DNA of 64,000 bases from Leucoraja ocellata (Eukaryota): NCBI GenBank assembly GCA_036785375.1, contig JAWMAR010000471.1:558001-622000 (forward strand), in the 5' to 3' direction. Below the pieces are notes generated by a model, which did not search any database, had not been told where the DNA came from, and saw nothing but the letters and a program-made list of their open reading frames with translations. The translations under genes were made by a program, and so were the position numbers. Shown in pieces: positions 29,238 to 64,000 of the stretch (its first letter is position 1; the number at the start of each line of letters is the position of its first letter).

Positions 29238-29307
29238 ATGAGTTGGAAGCGGCACTTGGAAGTGGAATATTATTATTATCCAATTCTGGCAGCAATCGGA
29301 GTACCCG
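29238..29307 (+). CDS. GPCR copy 3, coding exon 1 (MSWKRHLEVEYYYYPILAAIGVP)
   Basis: ATG at 29238, donor G|gtaggt at 29308, 70 nt, phase 1. Confidence 0.88.
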
Positions 29308-29494
29308 GTAGGTGAAGGGAACGCAGTAAGAGGGACTGAGACGTGGAATGATGTGTTGATAAAAAAATTGTTAACGGTGAAGTGAAAATAGTGTGCGAAA
29401 CACGGGAATGTTAGACTGCAACCTTCAAGTTAGGGCGGTATTAACTAGAAAATGTTTGTTTAAGAACTTACTGCAGTTGCTGGAGAAATCGAAT

Positions 29495-29625
29495 CTAGAC
29501 AAAAATGCTGGAGAATTAGACAGCGGGTGAAGCGGCATCTATGAAGCGAATGAATAGGTGACGTTTCGGGTCGAGACTGATCAGTCTGAAGAAGGGTCTC
29601 ATCTCGAAACGTCACCTATTCCTTT
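29495..29625. mobile_element. Penelope-like hairpin, copy 3 intron
   Basis: Paralogue of 14200-14340; stem II weakened. Confidence 0.65.
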
Positions 29626-30699
29626 GTTAAGCTATTTGATCGTTGGTCGTTCATTGGATCTGGCACAGGTTAATTCTCTTCAAATTCAGGTTTAGGTGCA
29701 TTGTTGTCATGTCTCTCCGGGAGCTGCAAAAAGCTTTGGTTTGCAAGAAATCCAAATTAGATCAAATAATATTAAATATCAGTACAAACAATTCAATCTC
29801 AGAAACAGGTAGTGTGAGAGGGGAAATCGTAGTGCAGAGCGTAGTTCAAGTTTGGGAGCGCACTGCAGCGTATCACATCCACAAAGCCCAATGTCCGCAA
29901 GGGGATAGAGGTGAAACGGCAATGCCCTGGCATATGGAAGAGCGGCTCAGAAGCCTGACAACAGAGGGGAAAGAGATGTTCTGGAGTCTGGTGGAGCGAG
30001 CTTTAAGCCTTCTCTATTTTCTGCCCGATGGAGCAGGAAGTAGAAGGAATGAGCGGGGTGAGACATGTCTCCGTTTCCAAGAGATTGTGAAGTGCAAACG
30101 CAGTCAACAGTGCGGAGTCCATTTCGTTATATGGACCCGGCGTCTTCCAGAACCCTGTGCAATTTATTCTTTATGGGGCATAGATGGCCCCTCAACAAGC
30201 TTTGTGCGGCACCGTTGTTGAGAATTATTGTGGAAGGGTGTTACCACTAATTCTCTCGGTTTATTCTTTAGGACGTTGAGTATCCATTCGCAAGCTGGTG
30301 TGTTGAGCGCTGGGCTCTGGAGTTTATCAATGGGTTTGGATGGGAGTAGTGTTGAAGGCAAGTTCTCCAGCGGAGAAATGGGAATCTTACTTTCGACTCG
30401 TTTGTTGCCCGGCTGTTCCCGGGAAGGGTTTAGGTCCAGGACGATGTCGTCTGATGCGGACATGTTGCTGCAATATAGAGTCTGCGGTGCAACAAGTGTG
30501 GCTGGGAGACAGCTCACGCTACCTGCGTAGACCGCTGCTAACTAATCCGCACAGCTGCTTGGCAAGCACCCAGGTTTGCATGTGGGCCAGTTGTTTTCGA
30601 ACAAATAAGCAAAGCGTGCCTTAAATTGATCCCCGCCTCCAAATTAGCATCGCGTTTCCCTTACATGTAACTACAGTTTCCTCTTTTCTACACCCGCAG

Positions 30700-31613
30700 T
30701 GAACTTGCTGGCAATTGTGATCCTGTCGCGCAGAAATTGTGGTCTCTCCAAATGCACCACTCGGTACCTGGTGGCCATGGCGACTGTGGACCTCTCGGTG
30801 ATCGTCTGCGAAGTGATATTACATCGGATTGCCGACCTTTACTGGGGGCACTCATTCCTCTTCCACAATACTGTGTGCAGGTCCATTATGTTCCTCGCTC
30901 CCGCGGCCGTTGCCTGTTCTGTTTGGCTCGCGGTCGCTTTCACATTTGATCGCTTTGTGGCCATTTCCACTCAGAATCTGAGAACCAGATACTGCACTGA
31001 GAGAACCGCGCTGGTGGTTACAGTGACCCTAACTGCGTTCTTCTGTTTACTGAACGTCCCCTGGCCGTTTGCGTACATTTATTATTTCAGGGATCGTCAG
31101 GGTACATTGTGGGGTTGCCAAATACTATATCACTTCTACAGCCTATCCTCGTGGATAGCATTTTCTTGGACTCAACAGCTGCTAGTCCCAGTCATTCCAT
31201 TTTGTTTGATTATGCTGATGAACGTACTCACAGTCAGACGCATTTTATTGGCCAGTCGTGTCCGCAGAAAACTCCGCGATCTCAGTAGTGAGGACCCCGA
31301 GATCGCAAACCGCAGACTGTCCGTAATTTTACTCCTTGCAGTCTCCAGCAGTTTTATGCTGCTCTGGGGCACAAACGTGGCATATTTCGTTTTCTATCGA
31401 ATTACGATTGCATTTAAGTACAGGGGGTTGAAGAACCCATTTGCAACATTTGAACAAACTGGAATTCTGCTACAATTGTTGAACACCAGCACAAACACGC
31501 TCATTTACACCGTGACCCAGAGGAGGTTCAGAGAGCATTTGCTCCAGGTACTCATGTACCCCTTCACCCTAACTGTACGTTTAATAAAATCGAGAAATCC
31601 TAGTGTAAAATAA
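30700..31613 (+). CDS. GPCR copy 3, coding exon 2 (spliced product 327 aa)
   Basis: Acceptor AG at 30698-30699; intact 7TM frame with DRF and NTLIY. Confidence 0.9.
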
Positions 31614-33582
31614 CATTACATTACTGATCCCTCCGTGAGTCAGTGCAAACACTAGGTAATGAAGGAGTTTTCTCTGAAATCATTCCCCATCAATTTTCAA
31701 AGAAATAGTTGAGAAATAGAATCCGAACGCGTCCCCAGCACTGGAAAGCACATTTGGCCATCTATTTAACATGCGACACGGGCGCGTTGTTCAACGTGCC
31801 CAGTGGGGAGGGCGGCCATGTTTAACCGAGTTCTATGTTGTACTGGAGCAGACCTCCAATGATTCCGGAATTGAGTCTCGCCGTTAACTGTTTCCACCTT
31901 CCTTTGAATCGAGCGGCAACGTCTCCAGCGCGCAATGAAAACAGACATAGAATTATGGTCCTAAACATTGCATGCTCCATTACTCTACAATTCTTTGAGA
32001 CGTCCCATGGTTACGTATGTAAATGCCCAGTGCACAAATGTGTTTAATAAAATTCTTGCTGCAACATTTACGTTAATGAAAGTTCGATTTTATATTTGTT
32101 TCTCGCACTGAATGTAATGCCTCGTTGCTTCTTCCAGAGGCTTTCGGTTTTCAGTACAATTAGTAACTCTGCACCAGATGCAGCCAAAGGTACTGGGTGC
32201 TATTCATACAAGTTGGCATTACTAACTATATTTTTAATGCAAGCAGTGTGTAACAAGCGAGTGTCCAGTAGAGGGCGGTAAACTGAGTAAGTTCACCTGT
32301 GTGGTAAAGATATGCTGAATCTATTTACATTAATGTCCCACCTCCATTGATGCAGCGCCGACGCAGGAGATCTGCCTATTTTAGATTCGAGGGAATACTC
32401 AGAGAGTCGGATTTATCTCCTCCTGCAGGGCAAGGAAATGTGGGAAATCCATTAATTTATTTTCCCCACCGATGGCGGCTGAGATCTGTATATCTCCAAA
32501 TTTGAGTTGAGCACTCTCTCCCCAAATCCTCCTCTCCCGACGCGGTAACAATTACATTTTTACATATTCCGATTGACGTTTTTCCCCTCGAGTCCGAGAC
32601 ACCTTCACTGAACATTTTATGCTTTATTTATTGACTTATTACTGATTAAAAGTAAGTAAGAATTTTAAAAACGTCAAAAGAATTTGACTTTAAATCGACC
32701 AGCTGCTTAGTGGCACGGCTAGCAGTGAACAGCGTCCCTGAAGATTTCATCCTATATTTCACGTTATTCGCGATTAAAACATTAAAATTGTCAACTTTCA
32801 CAAGATTTTTACATATTCTGATCCACATTTATCCCCTCCAGGCAGAGAGCACCTTCGCTGAACATGAGATGCTTTGTTTTTCGGCATTACTGATTAAAGT
32901 TTTAAAAAATCAAAATACTTTGAAAATTAAAACGGCTAGCTGCCACTGATGACGTCACGATGTCTCTGCGAGCAGTGATCATCTTCACTTACGTTCGGGA
33001 ACGGCTTCTGTTGGAGGACCACGCCTCCTGTGGGGGCTACGGGTAGGGAACGGGTGCGTTGGGGGAGCAGACCCCATCGAAGCCTCTCATAACTTTACAT
33101 ACCTCAACCAGATCTTCCTGCAATCTCCGACATTCCAGAGGGAAAGAATCCAAATATGACCAATTTCTCCCTGCACCGCTAATCCAGCCACCATTCCGGT
33201 AAATGAGCAACTGCGGCTCTAAAACACGATGTTTTTAATAAATGTGTCAATTTTCCTGAATTGGCAAAGACATTCACTAATTGCTTTGCTACTGGTCACC
33301 AATTAGTACAGCGTGCAAGTTTAGTTAGTTTACATTAGTTCTTGATATGCGTGGATAGGGTAGACTGTCAGAACTTTGATTTTCCCAACGGTCGGTTCTA
33401 ACCGGGATGGCTGGACGACTGGAGCGACTGAGCTTGTATACACTGGAGTTTAGAAGGATGAGAGGGCATCTTATTGAAACATATAATGTTATTGAGTGTT
33501 TGGACACGCTAGAGGCAGGAAAATTGTTCCCGATGTTGGGGGAGCCCAGAACCAGGGCCACTGTTTAAGAATAAGGGGTAAG

Positions 33583-34365
33583 CCATATAACCATATAACC
33601 ATATAACCATATAACCATATAACAATTACAGCACGGAAACAGGCCATCTCGACCCGTCTAGTCCGTGCCGAACACGTATGCTGCCCTCGTCCCATCTACC
33701 TACGTTCAGACCATAACCCTCCATTCCTTTCCCGTCCATATAACTATCCAATTTATTTTTAAATGATAAAAACGAACCTGCCTCCACCACCTTCACTGGA
33801 AGCTCATTCCACACTGCCACCACTCTCTGAGTAAAGAAGTCTCCCCTCATGTTACCCCTAAACTTCTGTCCCTTAATTCTCAAGGCATGTCCCCTTGTTT
33901 GAATCTTCCCTACTCTCAGTGGAAAAAGCTTATCCACGTCAACTCTCTCTATCCCTCTCATCATTTAAAGACCTCTATCAAGACCCCCCTTAACCTTCTG
34001 CGCTCCAAAGAATAAAGCCCTAACTTGTTCAACCTTTCTCTGTAACTTAGTTGCTGAAACCCAGGCAACATTCTAGTAAATCTCCTCCGTACTCTCACTA
34101 TTTTGTTGACATCCTTCCTATAATTAGGCGACCAAAATTGTACACCATACTCCAGAATTGGCCTCACCACGCCTTGTACAATTTTAACATTACATCCCAA
34201 CTTCTATACTCAATGCTCTGATTTCTAAAAGCCAGCACACCAAAAGCTTTCTTTACCACCATATCTACATGAGATTCCACTTTCAGGGAACTGTTCACAG
34301 TTATTCCCAGATCCCTCTGTTCACCTGCATTCTTCAATTCCCTACCATTTACCATGTACGTCCTA
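33583..34365 (-). mobile_element. Young CR1 3' fragment, (TTATATGG)n family, nested in an older CR1 end (33370-34620)
   Basis: (CCATATAA)n at 33583-33625; high identity to 8290-9060; empty site at ~45575. Confidence 0.9.
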
Positions 34366-34720
34366 TTTAGATGGAGATGCGGAAACAAATGTTCACACAG
34401 TGTAGTAAGTATGTGGTATTCTCTGCCTCAGAGGGCGGTGGGTATCGGTTCTCTGGATACTGTCAAGAGAGAGCTGGAGAGGGTTCTTAAAAATAGAGTC
34501 AGGGGATATGATGAGAATGCAGGAACTGGGTACTGATTGGGGATGATCAGCCATGATCACATTGAATGGCGGTGTTGGCTCGAAGGGCCGAATGGACTAC
34601 TGCTGCACCTATTGTCTATTGATAGGAAGCTAATCAGCTATTTTCCATCTCCGTCTTATCTGCAGTATCTTCTCTCTCTGCTTCCAGACCCATAAACTAA
34701 TTTATTGCACAAACACATGT

Positions 34721-35481
34721 CGATAGATAGAGATAGATAAATATATATTACTTTATTAATCCCCTTATTCAGGGGAGATTCAGATGTCCTTGCACACTAA
34801 TAAAAATACAACATAGCATTCAAGAAGGTTAACATCAAAACTTAAAAACATCCCCCCACAATGATTCCCACTGGGTGAAGGCACAAAGTCCAGTCCCCAT
34901 CCTCTTGTCCACCCAGAGTCGGGCCTATTGAGGCCTCCACAGTCGCCGTTACGGGGCCCGATGTTCCCGGCCGTTCTCGCCGGGTGTTGGTACTCCGGCG
35001 TCGGGAGAACCTTCAGCGGTTTGGGGTACCAGGAACGGCCGCCCTCCTACCGGAGACCACGGCTTCCAAGCCAACAGACAGCGCCGAACGGAGCCCCACA
35101 CACTGGCGATCTCGGAGAGAGATCCCAGGCTCCGGTATGTAAAGTTCAGCTGGCCGGTCCACAGAACCTCGGCTGCACGATGTTAGTATCGGCGGTCGCT
35201 CCGCAACAGCGCGCCACCGCCGCGCCGCCGCCGAAGCCGAGGTTCTGGCCAGGTCCCCTCAGGAAATGTCGCTCCAGGACCCGCTGGTAGGCCGCGAGGA
35301 CTGGTCGAACGTGCTGCTCGGAGGAAGGCAGCCTCTCCGACCAGGTAGGGACTTGAAAAGCAGTTTCCCACTCCCCTCCACCACCCCCCACACATAAAAA
35401 GATTAGCCCCCCCAACTAAACACTTTAGCGTACTAAAAATAATTAAAAAAAAAGAAGTGAAAGAAAACGGACAGCTGCAGG
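34721..35481 (-). mobile_element. GC-rich non-autonomous retroposon, (TATC)n tail, 6-bp TSD
   Basis: TSD ACATGT at 34715-34720 and 35482-35487; empty site at ~45230. Confidence 0.75.
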
Positions 35482-35696
35482 ACATGTGTTACTTTTTAAG
35501 CTAGGGGGCTCGACTGTGGCAAGTAAATTAACAGGCACAATCCTCGGCAACAAGCAGGATCGTTTCGTTGAACACCTCCGCTCAATTCGCCTCCAACGTG
35601 TCCAATCCCTTAATAATCTATTATGTTTAAAAATATACCCTCTCATCCTACTAAATTCCAGTATATACACGCCCAGCCACTCCATTATATTCACAT

Positions 35697-36478
35697 ATTC
35701 AGATTCAGATTCAGATTCAGATTCAACTTTAATTGTCATTGTCAGTGTACAGTACAGAGACAACGAAATGCAGTTAGCATCTCCCTGGAAGAGCAACATA
35801 GAATACGATTCCAATAAATAAATCTATTTACATGCATACAGTCATAGTGTTTTTCCTGTAGGAGGAGTGTCCGGGCGGGTGTGGTGGGTGGGGGGGTGGG
35901 GTGGTGATTGGCAGTCACCGAGGTACATGGTTGAGTAGTGTGAGGGACCGGTGATGCGTTGGTCAATGTTCATCACCCTCTGCAGTGCTTTCCGGTCGGA
36001 GACAGAGCGGTTGTCATACCATACTGTGATACAGTTGGTAAGGATGCTCTCGATGGTGCAGCGGTAGAAGTTCACCAGAATCTGAGGAGACAGGTGGAAT
36101 TTCTTCACTCTGCTCAGGAAGAAGAGACGCCGGTGAGCCTTCTTGACCAGAGTTGAGGTATTGTGGGTCCAAGAGAGGTCATCGGAGATGGTTGACCCCC
36201 AGGGACCTGAAGCTGGAAACACGTTTCATCTCCGTCCCGTTGATGTGGATGGGGGTGTGCGTGCCGCCCCTAGACTTCCTGAAATCTGCAATGAGCTCCT
36301 TGGTCTTCTTGGAGTTAAGTATCCAAGTAGTTGTCAGCGCACCATGCTGGTAGGAGCTGGACCTCCTCCCTATACGCCGACTCGTCGTTGTTGCTGATGA
36401 GGCCAATCACCGTTGTATTATCTGCATACTTGATGATGCTGTTCAGTCGTAGGTGAATCTGAATCTGAATCTGAATCA
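35697..36478 (-). mobile_element. Rex1/Babar LINE 3' fragment, (GAATCT)n tail
   Basis: IIKYADNTTVIGLISNNDESAYREEV, FYRCTIESILT. Confidence 0.88.
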
Positions 36479-36969
36479 GAATGACCATATTTGCTCCTAT
36501 ACTCAATTCCACTTATTATGAAGGCCAACGTGCGATTAGCTTTCTTCATTGCCTGCTGTACCTGCATGCTTACTTTCAGTGAGTGATGTACAAGGACCCC
36601 AATTGATACCCATCACCTTCTCAAGAGCAAAAGTTTCCTTCCCGTTCCAGTTAAATATTTCCACTCTCGCCATAAAACCTAATTCCTCTGGTTCTTGATT
36701 CTCCAACTATGGGTAAAGTACAAGATACAAGATACATTTATTTGTCACATGTACCAGTTGGTACAGTGGAATGTGTGGTCACCATATCACGATACAATAA
36801 AATAAAGAACACAACACACGATAGAGTCCAACATAAAACATCCCCACACAGCAGAATCAAAGTTTCCCACTGAGATTCACGTGTGATTCACGTTGCCCAA
36901 TCGATAATGATTTCATATACTCAGCCTCCTCCGCCCAAGGAATATAGGCTCAAGATATCAAAGGTCCGC

Positions 36970-38005
36970 CGTGGACACAGGCCCTTCTTCCCACATAATC
37001 TGCGCTCACCCCACACAGTGGAACTCTACTACAAGCTGGAGACAAGTTACAATTTGCAGACATTAAAAAATACGCATTTCGAGTCTGGGAAGAATCCGGA
37101 GCACCCGGAGAAAACCCAGGCGGTCATCAGAATCAGAATCGGAATCAGAATGCGGTTTATTGTCATTATGTATTTAGCGAATGCAAAGTCCTTTAACCAA
37201 GCAGTTGCCTCTTGATCTGTTGTATGAAGGGTGGCAAGTCCTCCTTTGAGTCTTTGTTGAGGACATGCTTCAATGATGTGTTGCATTGTTTTCTGCTCAC
37301 CACATGCACACCGTGAGGTTGGACTGCCATTTAAATATAGGTTCAAACGAAATTACGTTCCTGCAGTCATAACAACAACAAAAAAAAAACACAATTATCT
37401 CAATTGCACACAAACATCCATCACAGTGAATCTCCAAACAACTCCTCACTGTGATGTGAGGCAAAAGTATTATCTCTTCCCTTCTCTGTTCTTTATTCTT
37501 CTTCCGCAGTCCAGCAGTCAAACTGCTACATCGAGCTGATCGAGGCTTTTGATGATGGAGCCCCCGGCGGGCGATGGTAAGTCCCGCGGCCGTTTAAGCC
37601 TCGTCGGGCGATAGAGAGTCCTGCTACGGGTCGATTTAAACCCCTCGATTCGAGCGGGAGATGTTACCGTTGCGCAAGCTCCGAAAAACGGTCTCCCGCC
37701 AGGGACCTGCGAGCTCCCGATGTTACTGTCCACGGGGTCTGCGTCGGCCCGCTCCGCGATCATTAAAAGCCCCCCCCCCCCCCCCACACACACACACACA
37801 CACCTCCCCCCGCAAACGTCCTCCCTCCACACACACAAATACAGCTAATAAACCAAAACATACACCTAACAAGACAAAAATAAATAAAAGACAGACCGTA
37901 GGGGCCGCTGCCGCGAGGCGCCGCCATTTTGTCCAAACGGGAGAATTTACTAAATCGTTACTGTCAGCACTGTACTCAGGATCTAAACGGGTCTCCGACA
38001 GTGTA
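36970..38005 (-). mobile_element. HE1-like SINE interrupted by a GC-rich retroposon (37125-37935), itself interrupted by an Ingi/Vingi-like 3' fragment (37172-37330)
   Basis: SINE halves flank an element starting CAAAATGGCGGCG and ending (ATTCTG)n; CACGEQKTMQHIIEACP zinc-knuckle peptide present only in this copy. Confidence 0.65.
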
Positions 38006-38990
38006 ATGCCCCTGTCCCACTTAGGAATTAGTTTACCTTCCGGTGGGTCTTCAGTGTAAGGGAGCAACTCTCCAGCTACGACACTATGCCGCCTAATTTA
38101 TTCCTACACTGCTCAAACTATCCTTTTTGCGAATTCCCTCGAGGGAGTATAGTAGAGCTATGATCTAGTGAAGGTGTTGTCATGTTGCTGTTGTGGAGGA
38201 ATCCCCAGACTATTGCGATGCAGAGAAGTAATTCAGTACCGGCTCATGGAGCAAAAACAGTAATTACTGCATTAAGGTATTTGCACATTTGTGCAGTCAC
38301 CCATTGGGAAAGGCGCCAGGCGTATTCAAAGTGTTTAATTTTACTTACCTCACGGGCATATCCATCAGGGTATTTATTTTAGCAGTTGCTGTAGCTATGC
38401 ATCTGGTGTCTAGTGATATATCCAGCGACACAGATCTGGATTACTCAGCAAGGCCCAATGGTGAACTACCCATCTGCATTACTGCATCCGCCATTTGCGG
38501 TAACTAGTTTGGTTTATTGACTTCCTATTCTTCCCGCGTCCCGGACGATTTTTCTGCAATAAGTGAAGGCCAATGACCACCTGAAATTAGAAAGTCTGTC
38601 AGGGTGTTGGTGAAGTGGAATTGGTTAACGTAATTGTGACAATTCCCGGCCAGCCAATCCTCCATCCAGTGACACCCTAGTTTTTCTGATAAAAAACAGA
38701 ACCTTCTACAGTTATTAACCAGGTTCTCCAGAACTGAGAGAGAATGAAAATGAACACACGTTCCAGACCTCTGGTCACATGTTCTATCCCGCTGTCATAA
38801 GAGCTCTTGTAATTCTCTGCAGCTAGCGGCTAATGTTATGGAAACGGATTCCGGAGAAGCAGCTCGCAGTTGGAAACAATAAAACCACCAGGACACCTGC
38901 ACACAATGAAAGCAAACCGACAACTGAGAGATAACAGGAAAGCAGGCACATCCAACCGCATCAGCGGAGCAGAGAGCAAGAGAAAGGCAA

Positions 38991-39028
38991 TGTTTTTGTA
39001 AGGGGCTTAACTTGTTTCCATCACTGTG
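38991..39028 (-). promoter_or_regulatory. Recombination signal sequence (23-type; 22-bp spacer) of V segment 1
   Basis: CACAGTG + atggaaacaagttaagcccctt (22 nt) + ACAAAAACA. Confidence 0.93.
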
Positions 39029-39335
39029 CGCCACAGTGCGCAGTAGTAGACTGCAGAGTCGCTGAGATCCAGCCCTGAGATACTCAAGCTGGTGAACTTA
39101 GTCGCGGTATTGAGCTCAATAGAGAAACGAGTATCAGCGTGTTGGGACTTATCTTCATTGTTGCCGGTGTCTCTCGACATAGTAAACTCGGGCTGCATGC
39201 CTGGATATTGTCGGTACCAGGATAAAGCATATGCTGTCCATGTGGTATCATAGTTACAGGTTAAAGTCACCGCTTCTCCTTTTGTCTTCGTCACCGAGGG
39301 CAGTGGCTGTGTGACAGATTCTCCGTGAATGGTGA
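39029..39335 (-). CDS. TCR alpha/delta-type V segment 1, V exon (apparently functional)
   Basis: Acceptor ttttacAG; ESVTQP...VTLTCNY...WYRQYPG...RFS...SLSISGLDLSDSAVYYCALW with both Cys and the Trp of an IgV domain; YYCAL ending typical of TRAV/TRDV; immediately followed by an RSS. Confidence 0.9.
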
Positions 39336-39453
39336 CTGTAAAATAAATATATTTAGATAGTAACAGATACCTGAGTGCCATAAAATTGCACTTCTCAAGC
39401 CAACATCTCACTGAGTAGGGCGAGGGGAACTGAAAATATTGATCCAGAATTAC

Positions 39454-39499
39454 CTGTCAGAAACGCTCCCCACACGACACAGATGCCGAGGAAACGCAT
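39454..39499 (-). CDS. TCR alpha/delta-type V segment 1, leader exon (MRFLGICVVWGAFLT)
   Basis: 46-nt hydrophobic leader, donor G|gtaatt, 118-nt intron, phase 1: the canonical antigen-receptor L-V layout. Confidence 0.9.
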
Positions 39500-40657: not shown

Positions 40658-40841
40658 AAGGGTGTGTTTCCACGCAGTAAGACTCTATGATGCCACGATT
40701 CTAAAAAGAAACACCACAGTATTAACGTCATCCGTCCAAAGGCTACGGGCAGATGTGCAGTCGCTTCGGCCGTGTGGAGAAAATGGGAATTATTACGATG
40801 TTTTGATGTATACATTGAGAAATGCACGTGATTTCTATACG

Positions 40842-41595: not shown

Positions 41596-41734
41596 TACCG
41601 AGGAAAATAAGTAAATAAGTGAAGTAAATTACAAGCAAAGCCAGAAGGATGTGCAAGGAGCCATTTTCAATGAATGTGTTCAGTTCCACTCCCCCACATC
41701 TGCCATGTTTTGGCATATGAAATTAATTCCTGAG

Positions 41735-51524: not shown

Positions 51525-54500
51525 CATAGAAACATAGACACATAGAAAATAGTTGCAGGAGTAGGCCATTCGGCCCTTCGAGCCTGACCGCCATTCAATA
51601 TGATCATGGCTGATCATCCAACTCAGTATCCTGTTCCTGCTATCTTTCCATACCCCCTGATCCATTTACCCACAAGGGCCACATCAAACCCCCTCTTAAA
51701 TATAGCCAATGAACTGTCCTCAACTACCTTCTGTGACAGATAATTCCACAGATTCACCGCTGTCTGTGCGAAAAAATGTTTTTCTTATCTGGGTACAAAA
51801 AGAATTCCCCTTTATCGTTAAACTGTCACCCCTTGTCCTGGACTTCCCCAACAACGGGGACAATCTTCCTGCATCTAGCCTGTCCAACCCCTTAAGATTT
51901 TTGCAAGTTTCTATAAGATCCCCCCTCAATCTTCTAAAGTGTAGCGAGTACAAGCCGAGTCTATCCAGTCTTTCTTCATATGAACGTCCTGGCATCCCAG
52001 GAGTCAGTCTGGTGAACCTTATCTGTACTCCCTCTATGGTAAGAATGTCTTTCCTCAGATTTGGAGAACAAACTGTACGCAATACTCCTGGTGTTGTCTC
52101 ACCAAGCCCCTGTCAACTGCAGTAGAACCTCTCTGCTCCTATACTCAAATCATTTTTCTATGAATGCTAACATACCATTCGTCTTCTTCACTGCCTGCTG
52201 CACCTGTATGTCTACTTTAAATGACTGGTGTACCTTGACACCCAGGTCTCGTTGCATCTCCCCTTTTCCTAATCGGCTACAATTCAGATAATAGTCTACT
52301 TTCTTGGTTTTGCCACCAAAATGGATAACCTCACATGTATCCACATTATATCGCATCTGCCATGCATTTGCCCACTCACCCAGCCTATCCAAGTCACCCT
52401 GCAGCCTCTTAGCATCCTCCTCACAGTTAACATTGCCCCCCTCCCCCCCTCCACCTTCGTGTCATCACAAAATTGGATATGTTGCATTCAATTCCCTTGT
52501 CCAAATCATTAATATATATTGTGAATAGCTGGGGTCCCAGCACTGAGCCTTGCGGTACCCCACTAGTCACTGCCTGCCATTCTGAAAAGGACCCGTTTAC
52601 TCCTAATCTTTGCTTCCTGTTTGCAAGCCAGTTCTCTATCCACATAAATACTGAACCCCCAATACTGTGTGCTTTAAGTTTGTATACTAATCTATTATGT
52701 GGGACCTTGTCGAAAGTCTTCTGGAAGTCCAGATATAACACATCCACTGGTTCTCCCATATCCACTCCATTAGCTACATCCTCGTTAAATTCCATACGAT
52801 TCGTCAGACATATAACCATATAACAATTACAGCACGGAAACAGGCCATCTCGGCCCTACAAGCCCGTGCCGAACAACTTTCTTTCCCTTAGTCCCACCTG
52901 CCTGCACTCATACCATAACCCTCCATTCCCTTCTCATCCATATGCCTATCCAATTTATGCTTAAATGATACCAACGAACCTGCCTCCACCACTTCCACTG
53001 GAAGCTCATTCCACACAGCCACCACTCTCTGAGTAAAGAAGTTCCCCGTCATGTTACCCCTAAACTTCTGTCCCTTAATTCTGAAATCATGTCCTCTTGT
53101 TTGAATTTCCCCTATTCTCAAAGGGAAAAGCTTGTCCACATCAACTCTGTCTATCCCTCTCATCATTTCAAAGACCTCTATCGAGTCCCCCCTTAACCTT
53201 CTGCGCTCAAGAGAATAAAGACCTAACTTATTCAACCTATCTCTGTAACTTAGTTGTTGAAACCCAGGCAACATTCTAGTAAATCTCTTCTGTATTCTCT
53301 CTATTTTGTTGACATCCTTCCTATAATTGGGGGACCAAATTGTACACCATACTCCAGATTTGGTCTCACCAATCCCTTGTACAATTTAACATTACATCCC
53401 AGCTTCTATACTCAATGCTCTGATTTATAAAGTCTAGCATACCAAAAGCTTTCTTTACCACCCTATCTATATGAGATTCCACCTTCAAGGAACTATGCCC
53501 GATTATTCCCAGATCCCTCTGCTCAACTGGATTTGCCATTCGTAAATCCATGCTGACTTTCTCCAATGATTTCACCACTTTCCAAATGTGCTGCTATCCC
53601 ATCTTTAATAACAGACTCTAGCAGTTTCCCCACTACCGATGCTAGATTAACTGGTCTGTAATTCCCAGTTTTCTCTCTCCCTATTTTTTTAAAAAGTGGG
53701 GTTAAATTAGCTACCCTCCAATCCACAGGAACTACTCCAGAATTTAAGGAGTTTTTAAAAATTATCACTACTGCATCCATTATTTCTGGGGCTACTTCCT
53801 TAAGTACTCTGGGATGCGGCCTATCTGGCGCTGGGGGTTTATCGGCCTTTAATCCATTCAATTTACCACACACCACTTCCCGGCTAACCTGGATTTCACT
53901 CAGTTCCCCCATCTCAATTATCCCGCGGTCCCCTACGATTTCCGGCAGATTATTGATTTCTTCCTTACTGAAGACAGAACCAACGTAGTTATTCAATTGG
54001 TCTGCCAGTACCTTGTTCCCTATGATTAATTCACCTGTTTCTGACTGCAAGGGACCTACATTTGTTTTAACTAATCGTTTTCTCTTCACATATCTATATC
54101 AACTTTTCCAGTCCGTTTTTATGTTCCCTGCCAGTAATCTATGTTACATTTCCTAATTAAGCCCTTTGTCCTCCTCTGCTGGACTGGAACATTTCTCCCA
54201 GTCCTCTGATAGGCTGCTTTTTCTTGCTAATTTGTACGCTTCATCTTTTGTTTTGATACTATCCTGATTTCCCTTGTTATCCACGGATGCACTACCTTCC
54301 CTGATTTATTCTTTTGCCAAACTGGGATAAACAATTGTTGTAGTTCATCCATGCAGTCTTTAAATGCATTCCATTGCATATCCACCGTCAACCCTTTAAG
54401 AATCAAAATGCCAATCACCTTGGCCAACTCACGTCTCATATCCTCAAAGTTACTTTTCTTTAAGTTCACAATCCTTGTTTCTGAATTGAAAATGTCACTC

Positions 54501-54525
54501 TCCAATCCTAATGAAGAACTCAACC
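51525..54525 (-). mobile_element. CR1-clade LINE (5'-truncated) with nested young CR1 at 52808-53529
   Basis: (CATAGAAA)n tail at left; [23 protein letters not shown]; nested copy ends in (CCATATAA). Confidence 0.9.
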
Positions 54526-54599
54526 ATATTATTGTCGCAATATTTCTTAACCGTTGCGACAGCACCTGCCTCAACTACCTTCACCGGCAGCATGCTCCA

Positions 54600-55500
54600 T
54601 ACATAGGTGGTGGAGAGAAAGCTGGGTTCTTTACATAAGGACTTAGATAGGTTGGGAGAGTGGGCAGAGAAGTGGCAGATGGAATATTGAGTAACAAAGT
54701 GTGGAGTCATGCATTTTGGTAGAAGGCGTAGAATATTTCAAAAAATGGGGAGAGAATCAAGAAATCAAAGGTGCAAAGGGACATGAGAGGGCTATTGCAG
54801 GATTCCCAAACCAGGTAATTTGCAAATCGAATTGGTAGTAAAGAAGGCAAACGCAATGCTAGCATTTACTTCAATCGGGAAAGAATACAACAACAGGTAT
54901 GTAATACTGAGGCACTACAAAGGCGCTGGTCAGCTCGCCTTTGGAGTATTGTGAGCAATTGTGGGTACCATATCTGAGGAAGGATGAGCCAGCTGCGGAG
55001 AGGGTTCAGAGGACGTTTACAACAACGATTTCAAGAATGAGGCAGTTAAAATATGTTGATAGTTTGAAGACACTGAGCCTGTACTCGCTGGTGACTGAAG
55101 CATCAGGGGGGGGGGGGGGGGGGGGTAGGGCAAATTGAAACTTACCGAATCGTGAAACGTTTGCATAGAATGTACGTGGAGAGGATGATTCCACTAGACG
55201 AAGAATCTACGACCATAGGCCATAACCTCAGAATAGAATGGCGTTACTTTGGCAATAAGGAGGGACGAATTTCTTTAATTAATGGGTGGTGAATCTGTGG
55301 AGTTCTTTGCCACGCCAAGCTGTGGATGCCGTTAATTTATATATTTAAGGCAGAGATAGACAGATTCCGGATTAGTCGAGTGTTCTGGGTTAAGGGGAGA
55401 AGTGCACGAGAATGGGGTTGGGGGGGAGTGGGAGATTGATCTTCCATGATTAAATGGCAGAGTAGACATTGATGGGCCCAGGCCTAATTCTGCACCATCA
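54600..55500 (+). mobile_element. Degenerate CR1 3' fragment
   Basis: LDRLGEWAEKWQME, EYCEQLWVPYLRKD. Confidence 0.75.
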
Positions 55501-56791
55501 CGTATGACCTTGTCATCACTTATCAACACATGCTGCGATGTAATAATGTATTTGCAACCTTTCTACTGCTCTCCCCAGACACTGTTGAATTCACTTGACA
55601 TTTAACCAGTAATAATATTTTCCTGGATTCGCTTGGAGCTCCTCTTGAAAACAAAGGAGAATGGTCCTGTGCAGCGGTCTAAATGATGCAAATCACATGG
55701 ACCTTTCCAGTTGGCAGTGAATACAATTGGATACAGCAGCGGAATTAATATATTTCATGATGAAAATGATATGAGTATATAACGCATAACGTGCCAAATG
55801 ACCAGGAATAAATATCAGCAAGGAATGTCCTTGATCAAAGAGTTATATTTCGAGCTTATGTTTTTATCAATAAAAACAGACAGGCATGTGACGTTATTAC
55901 AGATATTAGGGGAAATCATCGGAATGCGTTGATAATGCATTGATGTGGAATTACTTGGCTAACCTCACATTAATTAAGTGGCTCACCTACATTTACTCAC
56001 ATTAAATTGCTGCTGCCATGCATCTGCCCACTCACCCCACCTGTCGAAGTCATTCTCACCGCATCCTCCTCACTGTTCACACTGTCACCCAGATTTGTGT
56101 CATCTGCAAATGTGCTAATGTTATTTGTGACCCCTTAGGTGGGAGGTAAAATTGTGTAATTTGTGTAAACAGTATTGGATGTATGCTTAGCCTCCGTGAA
56201 TGTCGGATGGGGTTTTGTAAGGATCATGTATTGGACATATTAATTTCTCGCATAAAGTATATTTTGAAATTCAAAAACGTGACGTACTATAATTCCACAA
56301 TTCACAATAATCGCAGTTGTTTTTCCCATAGTTCGAGATCTGTGAAGGCGGAACCATTTCCATGTAAAGACCTAGCCAAATGTTACGATTTCTCAATGTA
56401 TGGCTGCTCCTCCCCAACTGCCCTGATATCCACGCCATTCCGCGAACAAGTTGTTACATGTAGTTTACATGACGTCACAACACGTGTATAGTTAGCATAT
56501 TCGAAAAGATGATTTGTGGGCATTGTTGGCATATATTTCTTCGATTTTGGAGATGTATTTTGAATGTGAATCTCAATATTAATTTGTATCTGAACGCCCT
56601 CGCCGCCTGATCCTGATTATGGTGTTGTTAGCCGTTGGTAGCAATAACGTTTGTGTATTTTGCATAAGTGCATTATTTTAATGTTAATCAGCTGCTGACT
56701 GTTCACGTGGTGGAGACGACGCTGAAACTACACAGAGTGAACGATGCGCGGTCTAATAATGTTTCCACTGGAGGCAGAATACACCGCCCTA

Positions 56792-56863
56792 CTCCCTGAC
56801 CACAGAACCGAATCCAGGCAGCAGCGTCGGTGCGCAGAATGCAGATCACTAGACCACTCGATA
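56792..56863 (-). pseudogene. Decayed tRNA-Glu-derived sequence (paralogue)
   Basis: GTGGTCTAGTGA..ATTCTGCGC..GCCTGGATTCGGTTC..GGTCAGGGA; same position in the duplicated unit. Confidence 0.65.
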
Positions 56864-58188
56864 TACTGCTGCAACTCATGGACATTACAAACCTATTTTG
56901 CCGGCTAGCAGTGGTTAAAGTTCAATAATCACCCAGCTGCAATCTTTAAAAAACAAATCACACATTTTGTCGGTTCAGTGGTGCAGCTGCTGCCTCAAAG
57001 CTTCAGAGATCCGGATCAATCCTGTCCTCGGGTAATGTCTGAGTGGAGTTTTCCCGTCTCGCTGTGACCGTGTCGGTATCGTCCAGGTGCTCTGATTTCC
57101 TCCCGTATCAAAATACGTGTGGTTATTTTAGGTGAATTGGCCTGTGTAAACATGCACCAAGTGTGTGGGAATAGATGGAAAAAGTGGAATAACATGGAAC
57201 GAAAGTGATCGGGTCATCGATGGTTGGCGTGGACTCGGTGGGGTGAGGTCCTCAGGAATTAATTTCATTGGTCAAAACATGGCAGATGGAGGGGAGTGGA
57301 ACTGAAAACTGATTGAAATTTGCTCCTTGCACATTCTTCCGGCTTTGCGTGTAATTACTTCATATAGAAACCACGTGCATTTCTCAATGAAAACATCAAA
57401 ACATCGTAATAACTCCCATGTTCTCGACAGGGCCGAATCGACTGTAGATCTGACCACTGCCTGTCGCCTTTGGACGGATGCCGATAATACTGTGGTGTTT
57501 TGTTTTTAGAATCAAGGCATCATAGAGTCTTACAGCGTTGAAACATACCCTTCGGCCCAGCATGCCAACACCGGCCAACATGTTCCATCCACACCAGTCC
57601 TACCCGCAAGCGTTTCGCCCATATCCTCAACATCAGTTCTATTCATGTACATGTCAATGTTCTTCTTAAACTTTGCTATTTTACCTGCCTTAACTACTAC
57701 CTCCGCCAGCGCGTTCCGTGCGCCAAGCCCCCTCTTGCATGAAAAAGTTACCATTCTGGTCTCTATTAAATCTTCCTCCCCACTCAACTTCAATCTATGT
57801 TCTCTGTTTCTCGATCCCCCAATCTGGCCAAGGAGACTCTGTGAGTTTACCCGATCTATTCCATTTGTGAATATGCACCTTATTATTGTTTCGCTTAACA
57901 ATCTCAGGCTTAGCACCTTCACTACCGGTTTCCAAGAACAAATATGCCTTCCTCAATCAAGGTTTGTTCAAGCGGATGCGACTACTCTCGGGGGGGGGGG
58001 AAGCTGGATTCCAGCTACGTGTATTTCAATTGGCTGAGATCCCGCTGCCCCCCCCACATCTCTGACGACATCGCTGGGGGCACGGGGCAGTGACAGGGAG
58101 ACCAGCAGACGCCCTTCAACTGAGAAAACGCTCCTGTTACGAGTCTCGTCAAGTTTAGAACTCAGCTAGTACATAGTGAACGGGTAAA

Positions 58189-58655
58189 ATGCGTTTCATC
58201 GGCATCTGTGTTGTGTGGGGAGCGTTTCTGACAGGTAATTCTGGATCAATATTTTCAGTTCCCTCGCCCTCCTCAGTGAGATTTTGGCTTGAGAAGTGCA
58301 ATCTCATGGCACTCCGGTGTCTGTTACTATCTCAATATATTTTATTTTACAGTCACTATTCACGAGAATCTGTCACACAGCCACTACCCTCGGCGACGAA
58401 GACAAAAGGAGAAGCGGTGACTTTAACCTGTAACTATGATACCACATGGACTGGATATGCTTTATTCTTGTACCGACAATATCCAGGCATGCAGCCCGAG
58501 TTTACTATGTCGAGAGACACCAGCAACAAGAAGACAAGGCCCAATACGCTGATACTCGTTTCTCTATGAGCTCAATACCGCGACTAAGTTCACCAGCTTG
58601 AGTATCTCAGGCTGGATCTCAGCGACTCTGCAGTATATTACTGCGCACTGTGGCT
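58189..58655 (+). pseudogene. TCR alpha/delta-type V segment 2 (leader 58189-58234, V exon 58353-58655), frameshifted as assembled
   Basis: Close paralogue of V1 with splice sites retained; four 1-nt deletions relative to V1; conserved Trp of WYRQ changed to Leu (tgg>ttg). Confidence 0.85.
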
Positions 58656-58693
58656 CACAGTGATGGAAACAAGTTAAGCCCCTTACAAAACAC
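58656..58693 (+). promoter_or_regulatory. RSS of V segment 2
   Basis: CACAGTG + identical 22-nt spacer + ACAAAACAC (one A short of the V1 nonamer). Confidence 0.88.
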
Positions 58694-59512
58694 TCGCCTT
58701 TGTCTTGCTCTCTGCTCCGCTGATGCGGTTGGATGTGCCTGCTTTCCTGTTCTCTCTCAGTTGTCGGTTTGCTTTCATTTGTGCAGGTGTCCTGTGGTTT
58801 TATTGTTTCCAACTGCGAGCTGCTTCTCCGGAATCCGTTTCCATAACATTAGCCGCTAGCTGCAGAGATTACAAGAGTTCTGACGACCCGCGGGATAGGA
58901 CATGTGACCAGAGATCTGAAACGTGTGTTCTGTTTTACTCTCTCTCAGTCCTGGATAACCTGTTTAATAACTGCAGATTTTACAGTTTAGTTATTAAAAC
59001 GAGGGTGTCTCTGGATGGAGGATGGGCTGGCCCTGATTGTCACAATTACGTTACCCAATTCCACTTCACCGACACCCTGACAGACTTTCCAATTTCAGGT
59101 GATTGACCTTCACTAATAGCAGCAAAATCGTCCCGGACGCGGAAGAACAGGAAGTCAATAAAACAAACTATTTACCGCAAATGGCGGATTAGCTGTAATG
59201 CAGATGGATAGTTCACCATTGGGTCCTACTGAGTAATCCACATCTGTGTCGCAGGATATATCACTGGACACCAGATACATAGCTACAGCAACTGCTGAAA
59301 TAAATCCCCTGATGATATTCACGTGAGGGCAGTAAAATTAAACACTTTAAATACGCATGGCGCCTTTCCCAATGGGCGACTGCACAAATGTGCAAATACC
59401 TTAAGGCCGTAATTACTGTTTTGCTCAATGATCCGGTACTGAATTACTTCTCGACATCGCCATAGTCTGGGGAATTCCTTCACAACAGGAACATGACAAC
59501 ACCTTCACTAGA

Positions 59513-59943
59513 AGATTGTTCCTTCGCTAGAATTTAGTAGATTGAGGGGGGATCTTATGGAAACTTACAAAATTCTTAAGGGGTTGGACAGGCTAGATGC
59601 AGGAAGATTATTCCCGATGTTGGGGAAGTCATGAACAAGGGGTCACAGTTTAAGGATAAGAGGGAAGTCTTTTAGGACCGAGATGAGAAAATCATTTTTT
59701 ACACAAAGAGTGGTGATATCTGTGGAATTCTCTGCCAGAGAAGGTAGTTGAGGCCAGTTCATTGGCTATATTTAAGATGCAGTTAGATGTGGCCCTTGTG
59801 GCTAAAGGGATCGGGGGGTATAGAGAGGAGGCAGGTAAAGGATACTGAGTTGGATGAGCAGCCATGATCATATCGAATGGCGGTGCAGGCTCGAAGGGCC
59901 GAATGGCCTACTCCAGCACCTATTTTCTATGTTTCTATGTTCC
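59513..59943 (+). mobile_element. CR1 3' fragment
   Basis: (TTTCTATG)n tail; empty site at ~38165. Confidence 0.85.
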
Positions 59944-62900
59944 AGATCATAGCTCTACTATACTACCTCCATTGGGACTCGCTGAAAGGATAGGTTGAAC
60001 AGGCTAGGAATAAATTAGGCGGCGTAGTGTCGTAGATGTCGGTAACGATTTTGCAAGTTCTCACGGTTGGACAAGAAGGCGGGCGCCTCGCGGCAATGGC
60101 CTCCGCAGTCTATCTCTCTTTTATTTCTTTTTGTCTTGTTAGATGTATGTTTTGGTTTAGTTTTATAATTATTTTTAGCTGTGTATATGTGGGCGGGAGG
60201 GGGGGGGGGTGCAGGGGGATTTTTAAATTCTCTTCTCCGTTCTGGGACTCGAACCTTTTTCCCTCTCGAGTCTCCGTTGTTGTTGGGGCCTAACATCGTG
60301 CAGCAGGCGGCCTCAACCGGAATCGACCTGGGGCTCCAGTCGCACAGCCTGCGGACTCGCTATCGCGGAGCTGGCCGACATCGGTACGCGGAACGCTGCG
60401 GTGGCCGCGGCTGCGACCCGACTACGGCGCTTCGGAGGCTCCGGCTGCAGGCCCCGTGGAGGTAACATCGGGAGCTCGCGGGTCCCTTGTGGGGGACCAC
60501 TTTTCGGAGCTCCCGGTACGGCAGCTTTCCGCCCGAATCAAGGGGTTTAAATCTACCAGTAGCAGGCCTTATATCGCCCGGCACGGCGTAAACGAACGTG
60601 GGGCTTACCAGCGTCCGCCGGGGTCTCGAACATCAAAAGCGTCGATCAGCTTGATGCAGCAGTTTGACTGCTTGACTGCGGGACAAGAATAAAGAACAGA
60701 GAACAGGGAAGAGATAAGACTTTTGCCTTCCATCACAATGAGGAGGTGTTTGGAGATTCAATGTGATGTATGTTTGTGTGGAATTGTGCTAATTGTGTGT
60801 TTTTTGTTGTTGTTGTTCTGTCTGCAGGAAGTAATTTTCGTCCGAACCTACTTTAAAATGACAATACACATAATTCTGATTCCGATTCTGATTCTGATGA
60901 CTGCCTGGGTTTTCTTCCGCGTGCTCCGGTTTCCTCCCAGACTCGAAGCACGTACAGAAATATAATTTATTTTTAATGTCCTATATAAATAGTAAATTGT
61001 TTCCAGCTTGTAGTACAGTGCTACTGTATGGGGTGATCGATGGTAAACGCAGATTGTGTGGGACGAAGGGCCTATGTGCACAGCGGATCTCTGATATCTT
61101 GAGCCTATGTTCCTTGGGCGCAGGAGGCAGAGTGTATGAAGTCAATAGCGGATTGGACAAACGTGAATCACACGTGAATCACAGTGGAGAAACTTTATTC
61201 TGCTGTGTGGGGATGTTTTATGTTGGACTCATATTTGACTGTGTGTGTGTTCTTTATTTTATTGTATGGCTGTATGTTGACAACATTTTCCTGTACCAAC
61301 TGGCACATGAGACAAGTAAATGTATATTGTATCTTGTCCTTTACCCAGAGTTGGAGAATCAAGAACAGAGGAATTAGGTTAAAGGTGAGAGGGGAAATGT
61401 TTATCAGGAACGGGAGGGAAACTTTTGCACTTGAGAAGGTGATGGGTATCACTTGGGGTCCGTGTACATCACCACTGAAAATAAGCATGCGGGTACAGCA
61501 GGCAGTGAAGAAAGCGATTGCACGTTTGCCTTCATAACAAGAGGAATTGGGTATTGGAGTAAAGAGGCCATTCTGCAGTTGTACAGGGCCCTAGTGAGGC
61601 CACACCAGGAGTATTGTGCGCAGTTTTTGTCTCCAGATTTGAGGAACGACATTCTTGCTATTGAAGGAGTGCACCGTAGGTTCGCGGGTTAATTCCCGGG
61701 ATGGCGGGACTGTCATATGTGGATATAACGGAGCGGCTTGGGCTTGTATACACTGGAATTTAGTATGCTGAGATTAGCTCTTTTTGAAACGTAAAATATT
61801 ATTAAGGGATTGGGCCTTTGGAGGCAGGAACCATGTTCCGATGTTGAGAGGGTCCAGGCCTAGGGACCACAGTTTAAGAATAAGTTGTAGGCTATTTAGC
61901 AAGCGGGAGATCATGCAGTTTTATGCGAATTTAGCGGAGGTGTTCCACGAAACATTCCTGCACGTTACCGAGGGCTGTGCCTGTTAATTTACTTGCAAAT
62001 GTTGAGCACCCTAGCTTAAAAAGTAACACAGGTGTTTGTGCAATAAATTAGTGTATGGGTCTGGAAGCAGAGAGAGAAGGTCCTGCAGATAGGACAACAG
62101 TTGGAAATTAGGCTGATATAGCTTATTTTCAATAGACAATAAGTGCAGGTGTAGGCCATTCGGCCTTCGAGCCACCACCGTCATTCATGTGATCAAGGTT
62201 GATCATCCACAATCAGTACCCCGTTCCTGTCTTCTCCCCTTTTCTTCCCTGACTCCACTATCCTTTAAGGGACCTATCTAGCTCTCCTCTTGACAGTATC
62301 CAGAACCGGCCTCCACAGACTCAGTACTATGTGTGAAAATTTGTTTCGGTATCTCCATCAAAATGGCGTACCCCTTATTATTAAACCGTGGACCTGGTTC
62401 TGGACTCTCCCAACATCGGGAACATGTTTCCTGCCTCGAGCGCGTCCAACCCCTCAATAACATTATATGTTTCAAAAATAATCCCTCTCATCCTTCTAAA
62501 TTCCAATATATACAAGCCCAGTCACTCCATTATTTCAACATCTGCCAGTGCAGCCATCCCGGTTAGAACCGACCGTTGAGAAAATCAAAGTTCTGAAGTC
62601 TACCTGTAGACGCCTATCATGAACTAATGTAACTAACTAAACTAGCACGCTGTACTAATTGGTGGCCAGTAATAAAGCCATTAGTGAATGTCTTTGCCAA
62701 TTCGGCATTTGGACACATTTACTAAGTACACCGTGTTTTAGAGTCGCTGTTGCTCATTTACCGGAGTGGTGCTGGATTAGCGTTGCAGGGAGAGATTGGT
62801 CATATTTGGATTCTTTCCCTCTGGAATGTCGGAGATTGCAGGAAGATCTGGTTGAGGTATGTAACGTTATGAGAGGCTACGGTAGGGTCTGCTCCCCCAA

Positions 62901-63639
62901 CGCACCCGTTCCCTACCCGTAGCCCCACAGGAGGCGTGGTCCCCAACTCAAGCCGTTCCCGAACGTAAGTGAAGCTGATCACTGCTAGCCGAGCCATTGT
63001 GACATCATCAGTAGAAGCTAGTCGGTTTACAATTCAGTCTTTTGATTTTTTTAGAACTTCAATCAGTAATGTCGAGAAATAAAGCATAACATGTTCAGCG
63101 AAGGTATTTTCGGCCTCGAGAGGGAAAATGTCAATCAGAATATGTAAAAATGTAATCGTTACCGCGTCGGGAGCGGAGGATTTGGAGAGAGAGTACTCAA
63201 CTCAAATTTGGAGCTATACAATTCTCAGCCGCCATCGGTGAAGAAAATAATTAATGAATTTCTCACATTTCTTTGCCCTGCTGGAGGAAATAAATCCGAC
63301 TGTGAGCACTCACTCGAATCTCCAATAGGCAGAGCTCCAACGTCGGCGCTGCATCAATGGAGGTGGGACATTAATGCAAATCGATTCAGCATCTCTTTAC
63401 CACACAGGTGGAACTTACTCACTTTACCGCCCTCTACTGGACACTCGCTTGTTACTCATTGCTTGCATTAAAAATATAATTAGTAATGCCAACTTGTATG
63501 AATAACACCTCACTCACTACATTTGGCTGCATCTGGCACTGAATTACTAATTGTACTGAAAACCGAACACATCTGTAAGAAGCAACGGGGCATTACATTC
63601 AGTGCGAGAAACAAATATAAAATGGAACTCTCATTAACG

Positions 63640-64000
63640 TACCGCTGTATCCATCGAAAGCATCCTGATCACCTGCTTCACGGTATGGTACAGCAGTTGC
63701 CACCGTAGCGGACAGGAAGGCACTACAACGGGTGGTGAAAACCGCTCAGTATATCATCGGTGCCCGCTCCCTGCCATGGATGCCCTGCACCGAAAACGGT
63801 GTCTGAGACGGGCCGGGAAGTTCATCAAAGACCCCTCCCCACCCTAACCAGGGACTGTTTGCCCACCTCCCATGAGGGAGGCGGTACAGGAGCCTCGGGT
63901 CTCGTACTAGTAGGACGAGGAACAGCTTCTACAAGAACACTATCACATTGCTGAACTCGGAGTCCCGCCGATAGATTTCTCCAGTCTCTCCGTCCGCATT
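63640..64000 (+). mobile_element. Rex1/Babar LINE 3' fragment (runs off the window)
   Basis: YRC..ESIL..CFTVWYSSC..DRKALQRVVKTAQYII..GRRYRS..RNSFY-like peptides across frames. Confidence 0.8.

Follow-up and report, generated by a model that had tools for sequence, protein, structure and literature searches.

A lineage-specific GPCR subfamily multiplied beside T-cell receptor alpha/delta-type V segments in a probable V region of the skate Leucoraja ocellata

We analysed a 64-kb stretch of contig JAWMAR010000471.1 from the skate Leucoraja ocellata (the window; no N in its sequence, positions counted from its first letter), in which genes of the class-A G-protein-coupled receptor (GPCR) type lie among variable (V) segments of the antigen-receptor type. 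The window holds four paralogous class-A GPCR reading frames, three on the forward strand (G1–G3) and one on the reverse strand (G4), and exactly two V-type segments (V1 and V2, by tblastn with V1), arranged in the order G G G V G Vψ. We suggest that the window is probably a piece of the alpha/delta-type V region of the skate T-cell receptor (TCR), where a GPCR subfamily specific to skates was multiplied by local segmental duplication and V genes were sometimes carried along. An initial annotation of this DNA had proposed that a GPCR and a V segment duplicate together as one unit and that the two gene types alternate. The gene order does not bear out alternation in that form; co-duplication is seen for one pair of units, which share a GPCR flank and a V segment, and not for the tandem units of G1–G3 or for the unit of G4, which lack a V.

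The V-type segments and their parts are as follows.

39029 to 39499, reverse strand: V1 gene, with a split leader, a V exon and a 23-type recombination signal sequence (RSS)
39454 to 39499, reverse strand: V1 leader exon, 46 nt, encoding MRFLGICVVWGAFLT plus one base
39336 to 39453, reverse strand: V1 intron, 118 nt, gt..ag, leaving the V exon in phase
39029 to 39335, reverse strand: V1 V exon, intact, with a Pfam V-set match (E 2.7e-15) and Cys23, Trp41 and Cys104
38991 to 39028, reverse strand: V1 RSS, with heptamer CACAGTG at 39028, a 22-nt spacer and nonamer ACAAAAACA
58189 to 58693, forward strand: V2, a predicted pseudogene, with leader (58189–58234), V exon (58353–58655) and RSS (58656–58693)

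The V1 exon displays the hallmarks LTC, WYRQ and YYC and ends in YYC...ALW (CALW). Its RSS directly abuts the exon and matches the consensus at 7/7 heptamer and 8/9 nonamer positions. V1 is predicted to be a usable germline V. Among solved structures, its best single-domain matches were a human TRA@ chimeric chain (4mng_E, E 4e-20) and human V-delta-1 (3omz_A, E 8e-20), the rows ranked above these being two-domain antibody constructs scored over several stretches. In a protein search, 43 of 47 candidates matched V1 at E ≤ 1e-3, headed by a Callorhinchus sequence (50% identity) and followed by teleost V regions, one of which carries the name "T-cell receptor alpha/delta variable". Moreover, the closest ESM Atlas clusters were TCR alpha/delta variable, TVA4 and TVAZ2 (scores 0.96–0.97), with a TCR gamma cluster ranking 19th. 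The assignment of V1 to the TCR alpha/delta type, as judged from these similarities, is well supported but not proven.

In V2, too, a leader, an intron and an RSS (CACAGTG, 22 nt, ACAAAACAC) are preserved. Compared with V1, its V exon carries four 1-nt deletions and a change of Trp41 to Leu, and in the spliced phase its frame meets a stop after 22 codons. Three of the four deletions fall in short homopolymers, where sequencing error is conceivable; we nevertheless read V2 as a pseudogene, because the loss of Trp41 is a substitution. The tblastn search with V1 returned nine rows at E ≤ 10 over the window, namely V1 itself (E 3e-68), V2 (E 1e-37) and seven others with E ≥ 0.32, and hence no third copy of V1. 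Neither this search nor low-stringency blastn of the window with the 801-nt V1 unit found a V or a V remnant beside G1, G2 or G4.

Copy relationships were derived from a self-alignment of the window, with distances given as Kimura two-parameter (K2P) values. The alignment delimits three large units and their parts.

27623 to 42966: unit A, comprising the G3 upstream region, G3, block F1 (to 33589), transposon insertions, blocks F2 and F3, the V block, transposons and block W
38164 to 40120: V block in unit A; in unit C it starts at 59512
41620 to 42966, no strand assigned: block W, the far end of unit A, recurring inverted at 57362–56071 (K2P 0.126)
42964 to 43046, no strand assigned: (GT)41 microsatellite at the junction of unit A and the inverted, V-less unit B
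43257 to 51240, reverse strand: unit B, comprising the upstream region, G4 and F1–F3, in opposite orientation to unit A and truncated ahead of the V block
56071 to 63641, reverse strand: unit C, an inverted copy of 32069–42966 comprising W, V2, F3, F2 and F1

In the assembly, G3 on the forward strand and V1 on the reverse strand are tail-to-tail neighbours, as the initial annotation had described. The inverted recurrence of 32070–42966 at 56065–63640, claimed there as well, was recovered as eight collinear inverted alignments between 32069–42966 and 63641–56071, with identities of 83.5–89.4%. These alignments support a single inverted segmental duplication, represented by units A and C, that would have copied the GPCR 3' flank and the V segment together. 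V2 and a GPCR 3' flank do stand in the same relative layout in unit C, as had been claimed, but the V is a predicted pseudogene and no GPCR was seen beside it inside the window. The blocks common to A and C include the GPCR 3' flank and the V; the GPCR itself is not within unit C as seen in the window. At 63641 the match to the GPCR flank breaks off and gives way to the 3' part of ORF2 (open reading frame 2) of a long interspersed nuclear element (LINE), and the GPCR partner of V2, if one exists, lies beyond this insertion, outside the window. The inversion between units A and C accounts for the opposite orientations of V1 and V2, and for the one facing away from the J segments, joining would be possible by inversion only.

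The G4 unit had been described as cut just before its V, and this was confirmed. Homology on the G4 side runs from 48960 down to 43626 in the comparison with unit A, and unit B ends at 43257 in the comparison with unit C, about 0.4–0.5 kb short of the V block, which is absent. G4 (47582–48544) sits between V1 (39029–39499) and V2 (58189–58655), such that this GPCR is flanked by two V genes. In addition, G1, G2 and G3 form direct tandem units that repeat about every 15 kb (offsets 14851 and 15301 bases). The homology that the G1 and G2 tandem units share with unit A ends at 32347 and contains none of F2, F3, V and W, and only G3 has a V of its own. The duplication breakpoints coincide with the (GT)41 repeat and with LINE sequence. 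K2P distances were 0.058 between G1 and G2, 0.08–0.11 among the other GPCR cores, 0.10–0.16 among units A, B and C, and 0.096 for the V block. Given the values of 0.10–0.16, we regard the copies as old paralogues rather than as assembly duplicates.

The four GPCR frames have the following coordinates; TM denotes a transmembrane helix.

494 to 1462, forward strand: G1, 7tm_1 match (E 1.3e-18), frame open from shortly ahead of TM1 down to its stop and lacking an in-frame ATG before TM1
15354 to 16349, forward strand: G2, 7tm_1 match (E 2.6e-19), no in-frame ATG before TM1
30654 to 31613, forward strand: G3, 7tm_1 match (E 7.2e-15), no in-frame ATG before TM1, homology extending over 30654–31652
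47582 to 48544, reverse strand: G4, 7tm_1 match (E 3.9e-18), ATG at 48544 and an in-frame TAG at 48487–48485 inside TM1

Pfam 7tm_1 (PF00001) was matched by 4/4 copies, and no other Pfam family was. In a protein search, 1350 of 3538 candidates matched at E ≤ 1e-3; in the 120 matches listed, every named row is a cartilaginous fish (skate, ray, shark or chimaera). The best homologues among the matches listed are a nameless protein (90%), a Leucoraja erinacea protein (87%) and an Amblyraja protein (66%). In a tree, G1–G4 grouped with the L. erinacea protein P0045 and the nameless protein P0044 in one clade with support 1.0. By these comparisons, G1–G4 appear to be a young, local, skate-specific subfamily of a large cartilaginous-fish family of class-A GPCRs.

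The relatives of G1–G4 are labelled "probable G-protein coupled receptor 139" in RefSeq, and the initial annotation had called the family GPR139/142-like. Its class-A, seven-transmembrane nature is evident in all four copies; the specific likeness to GPR139 is not. Human GPR139 (7vug and others) is the sole solved receptor that aligns over nearly the whole GPCR frame (residues 13–297), but it does so with only 30.2 bits (E 3e-6), no better than the cholecystokinin receptors CCK-B (31.1 bits) and CCK-A (28.5 bits), and similarity to GPR139 above that to other class-A receptors was not found. "GPR139-like" would thus be a loose label. The family is best described as divergent and lineage-specific, with hundreds of predicted cartilaginous-fish members, and we reject orthology to GPR139 on the basis of these scores. 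Membership of G1–G4 in the olfactory receptor (OR) family was ruled out, as the copies match 7tm_1 only and their nearest named relatives are GPR139-labelled. In G2, the stop codon found in G1, G3 and G4 is lost (16290–16349), making the frame nine residues longer than that of G1.

Taken together, the copy relationships suggest two kinds of copying. In the first, a GPCR-only unit, made up of the GPCR, the region upstream of it and some 0.7 kb of its 3' flank, would have been copied in tandem to give G1, G2 and G3, with transposon insertions stretching it to about 15 kb. In the second, a larger unit reaching from the GPCR flank through the convergent V would have been copied, inverted or direct, to give units A, B and C, unit B having lost or never received its V at the (GT)n junction. 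Most of the copying in view would then be that of the GPCR unit alone, and the V genes would be occasional passengers or neighbours of GPCR duplication rather than the obligate half of a cassette. As the cause we infer hitch-hiking by segmental duplication with birth-and-death decay, to which the presumably dead V2 and the stop carried by G4 may both be ascribed.

We also asked how the G3–V1 region is represented in sequencing reads and contigs. Among the runs searched, none contained half of the words of 30200–40000, the best share being 0.40. Reads from four runs (X1, X4, X6 and X20, the last guessed to be RNA) were mapped onto 33900–39850. Summed depth was about 10^3 to 10^6 in nearly all bins of 33900–38078, which is high-copy transposon DNA. 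Over the V block (38079–39670), depth was about 20–80 in X1 and X4 and 159–1013 in X6. Moreover, contigs from three organism labels cross the boundary between the V1 exon and its RSS at about 97–98% identity (lengths of 405, 390 and 243 letters, with 9, 13 and 4 differences, respectively). The V block is real, low-copy and common to relatives or close paralogues. Within 38728–39132, across the RSS and the last part of the V exon, the contigs from the three labels agree on four differences from the window, at 38932, 38982, 38989 and 39046. Either the three organisms are related to the source species, or the genome contains, at another place, a paralogue of V1 that is closer to these contigs.

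Several observations weigh against the proposed reading. No D, J or C element was seen within the 64-kb window, so that membership of V1 and V2 in a TCR locus is presumptive; a scan of the window for J segments (nonamer, spacer and heptamer, followed by an FGxG/WGxG frame) gave as its sole match a low-complexity, G-rich false positive at about 43.4 kb. A complete, ATG-started frame from TM1 to TM7 is present in 0/4 GPCR copies, and copies without a normal start could be recently dead. Units A, B and C are roughly equidistant, in a near star-like pattern that favours no particular order of duplication and no particular origin of the V-less state of unit B. No run recorded as RNA was found to contain 30200–40000, and the guessed-RNA run X20 mapped only to the transposon parts, with depth 0 on V1. 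Finally, G3 and V1 are bridged by neither a contig nor a read, none of the pieces listed for this stretch exceeding 544 letters and the spacer being high-copy; the adjacency of G3 and V1 is accordingly taken from the assembly.

The missing GPCR start calls for an alternative. All four GPCR copies might be pseudogenes, copied only by virtue of lying in duplication-prone DNA; this concerns the status of the GPCRs and overlaps with the reading of the window as a V region with a locally multiplied GPCR subfamily. In the family at large, 38 of the 101 proteins matching an NLLAIVIL-type motif (among 120 listed) have a Met exactly 24 residues ahead of it, but in the corresponding region (440–520, 15290–15370 and 30590–30700) G1–G3 contain a stop and no ATG, and G4 carries the TAG within TM1. 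In G3, the upstream stop stands four codons ahead of the position at which the frame of G1 opens. The gene model of the L. erinacea protein P0045, the closest one with a name, begins at an internal Met after TM1. Two other candidates for a start were rejected: an ATG farther upstream (MWA...) is stop-interrupted in G2 and G3 and frameshifted in G1, and a donor/acceptor pair near that ATG, inspected by eye, leads to an immediate stop. In 4/4 copies, a pyrimidine-rich, acceptor-like ...cag site directly precedes TM1, and an upstream coding exon is therefore possible.

The record of changes in the frames speaks against death of the copies. In a comparison of the four GPCR copies, no indel event was found in 888 coding columns versus 24 in 1202 flank columns, where the flank rate would by arithmetic predict about 10 to 18 coding indels, and variable columns numbered 95 of 888 in the coding part versus 230 of 1202 in the flank. 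The ratio of nonsynonymous to synonymous substitution rates (dN/dS) was 0.40–0.64, below 1 in 6/6 pairs. We judged constraint by the indel contrast because a neutrality test based on stop codons is weak, random placement of the 95 changes giving ≤1 stop in 18% of trials. The GPCR frames are clearly constrained, as if kept open by selection, and we consider it rather doubtful that all four are pseudogenes, although the idea deserves serious weight. With no ATG-started frame that includes TM1, the copies are nevertheless not plainly intact.

Alternatively, V1 and V2 might be orphons, carried by segmental duplication from a functional TCR locus into a GPCR array and unused in rearrangement. The absence of D, J and C elements from the 64 kb, the decay of V2 to a predicted pseudogene and the opposite orientations of V1 and V2 would all fit such an origin. 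However, the leader, the splice sites and the hallmarks of the domain are all intact in V1, and its RSS is close to consensus, even though the surrounding DNA has diverged by a K2P of 0.10–0.16, and V arrays normally extend over hundreds of kilobases without a J or C element. We therefore consider an orphon origin improbable.

The initial annotation had also raised the possibility of shared lymphoid regulation. In a functional coupling of this kind, the GPCRs would share lymphoid or V-locus regulation, for instance through CTCF-anchored loops or stochastic choice of one gene, and the pairing would have been selected for. CTCF sites organise V arrays in mammals, and a CTCF-type core consensus had 13 matches at ≤2 mismatches in the window versus 5.04 expected, each being a motif match only; none of them lies behind the V1 or V2 RSS. 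The copies in the GPCR 3' flanks are the following.

32265 to 32279, forward strand: exact match to the CTCF-type core, about 650 bases 3' of the G3 stop, in unit A
46921 to 46935, reverse strand: paralogous exact match, in unit B
63426 to 63440, reverse strand: paralogous exact match, in unit C
16983 to 16997, forward strand: match with one mismatch, in the G2 unit

Units A, B and C thus all retain the exact core in the 3' flank of the GPCR, where it lies between GPCR and V, and the GPCR frames are constrained, both of which would fit coupling. The three exact copies are paralogous, however, and so count as one event. Moreover, the GPCR-only units duplicate without a V, and the RNA results given above (no recorded RNA run with this region, depth 0 of X20 on V1) offer coupling no help. 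V(D)J joining excises or inverts the DNA between the V and the J that are used; T cells would thereby in many cases lose the GPCR copies that lie in between, which would argue against a role there. Nothing supports shared regulation of the GPCR and V genes, and functional coupling seems very unlikely. An extended version, in which a megabase-scale mixed GPCR/V array exists, its GPCRs use V-region chromatin (the CTCF-type site) for stochastic or lymphoid expression, and the association of ORs with TRAV genes in mammals is a remnant of an ancient pairing between a chemoreceptor-type GPCR array and the alpha/delta V array, is likewise a long shot.

That the repeated blocks or the GPCR–V join are false duplications or misjoins of the assembly may be dismissed as extremely improbable: although G3 and V1 are separated by 4.5 kb of very high-copy DNA that no mapped piece spans, the copies differ by 6–16% with private transposon insertions and indels, far beyond allelic differences, the window has no N, and the V block recurs in contigs from three other organism labels.

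Apart from the GPCR and V genes, the window is transposon-rich. In a domain scan of ten ORFs, five matched reverse transcriptase (two of them below the Pfam cut-off), one an endonuclease domain and one a LINE-tail motif filed as ALKBH8_N, with no match for the remaining three. The main transposon-derived stretches beside the units are listed here.

33599 to 38078, no strand assigned: transposon-rich spacer from the G3 flank to the V block, with LINE fragments, very high-copy in DNA runs
35842 to 36222: ALKBH8_N-like LINE tail inside the G3–V1 spacer
51240 to 56071, no strand assigned: LINE-derived filler between units B and C, with a weak RVT_1 match at 53523–54089 (18.4 bits, below the Pfam cut-off)
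63642 to 64000, forward strand: 3' part of a LINE ORF2 at the unit C homology break

By eye, the ORF2 tail at 63642–64000 is similar to the ALKBH8_N-matching ORF at 35842–36222. The spacer after G1 contains a nearly complete LINE ORF2 (6234–8689, forward strand), comprising two ORFs, one for an endonuclease (377 aa) and, after it, one for a reverse transcriptase (408 aa), and fragments related to it lie at 33599–34372 and 52809–53533. A G-rich run of 39 bases (43425–43463) is located 0.4 kb beyond the (GT)41 repeat.

Known antigen-receptor loci harbour a few foreign genes, namely ORs in TRA/TRD and trypsinogens in TRB. If the reading of the window as part of a TCR alpha/delta-type V region is correct and extends beyond it, a TRA/TRD V region pervaded by dozens of lineage-specific GPCR copies would be the most extensive case known. 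Such an arrangement would bear on the annotation of the locus, on the interpretation of V-region looping and V usage, and on how a large, unstudied GPCR family might be approached. It would also allow a natural test of what becomes of genes inside a V array in lymphocytes (silencing, deletion or co-option), and T-cell clones would differ in their GPCR gene content because T cells cut out or invert what lies between V and J. What the window alone offers is more modest: one co-duplication event, one V predicted to be functional and GPCR copies of uncertain competence.

Several known systems invite comparison. Trypsinogen genes are embedded in the TRB locus, where, as in the skate window, an unrelated multigene family lies inside an antigen-receptor V/D-J region and is duplicated along with it; the case involves another family and another locus. 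Tandem arrays of OR, TAAR and V2R genes likewise consist of single-exon GPCR paralogues, and the dN/dS of 0.40–0.64 and the G4 stop, as a sign of birth-and-death evolution, extend the resemblance, which for the skate genes is known at the level of DNA sequence. In the part of the catshark study considered here (PMC11979771), the olfactory families are only OR, TAAR, ORA and V2R, and the G1–G4 family is not among them.

For elasmobranchs, the account of Flajnik et al. 2025 (PMC12227049), as far as its main text goes, describes an antigen-receptor complex in which immunoglobulin heavy-chain (IgH) clusters, UrIg2 and TCR alpha/delta are linked. In sharks and rays, according to the same text, the TCR alpha/delta V exons are spread over a large region, mixed with other genes and among immunoglobulin clusters. 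The terms "GPR" and "G protein" have 0 occurrences in that main text. By title and abstract, literature on GPR139 together with shark, cartilaginous or Chondrichthyes gave no account of such a family or of a TCR neighbourhood, and literature on the elasmobranch TCR alpha/delta locus, NAR-TcR and TCR-delta genomics gave no locus paper naming such GPCRs. The suggestion of the initial annotation that the pairing of V segments and GPCRs is possibly undescribed agrees with this search.

The parallel that it drew to mammalian TRA/TRD is real. In the relevant part of PMC4574546, human OR10G2 and OR4E2 are placed between TRAV genes and mouse Olfr1507–1509 between TRAV1 and TRAV2, and in both settings TCR alpha/delta V genes have intronless class-A GPCRs from a multigene family between them. 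The mammalian loci have two or three ORs at their 5' edge, whereas the skate window has four copies in 64 kb that belong to another family and are co-duplicated with V-bearing DNA. Foreign multigene families within antigen-receptor loci are already known, and what the present window adds is a different GPCR family in what is probably a V region of a skate.

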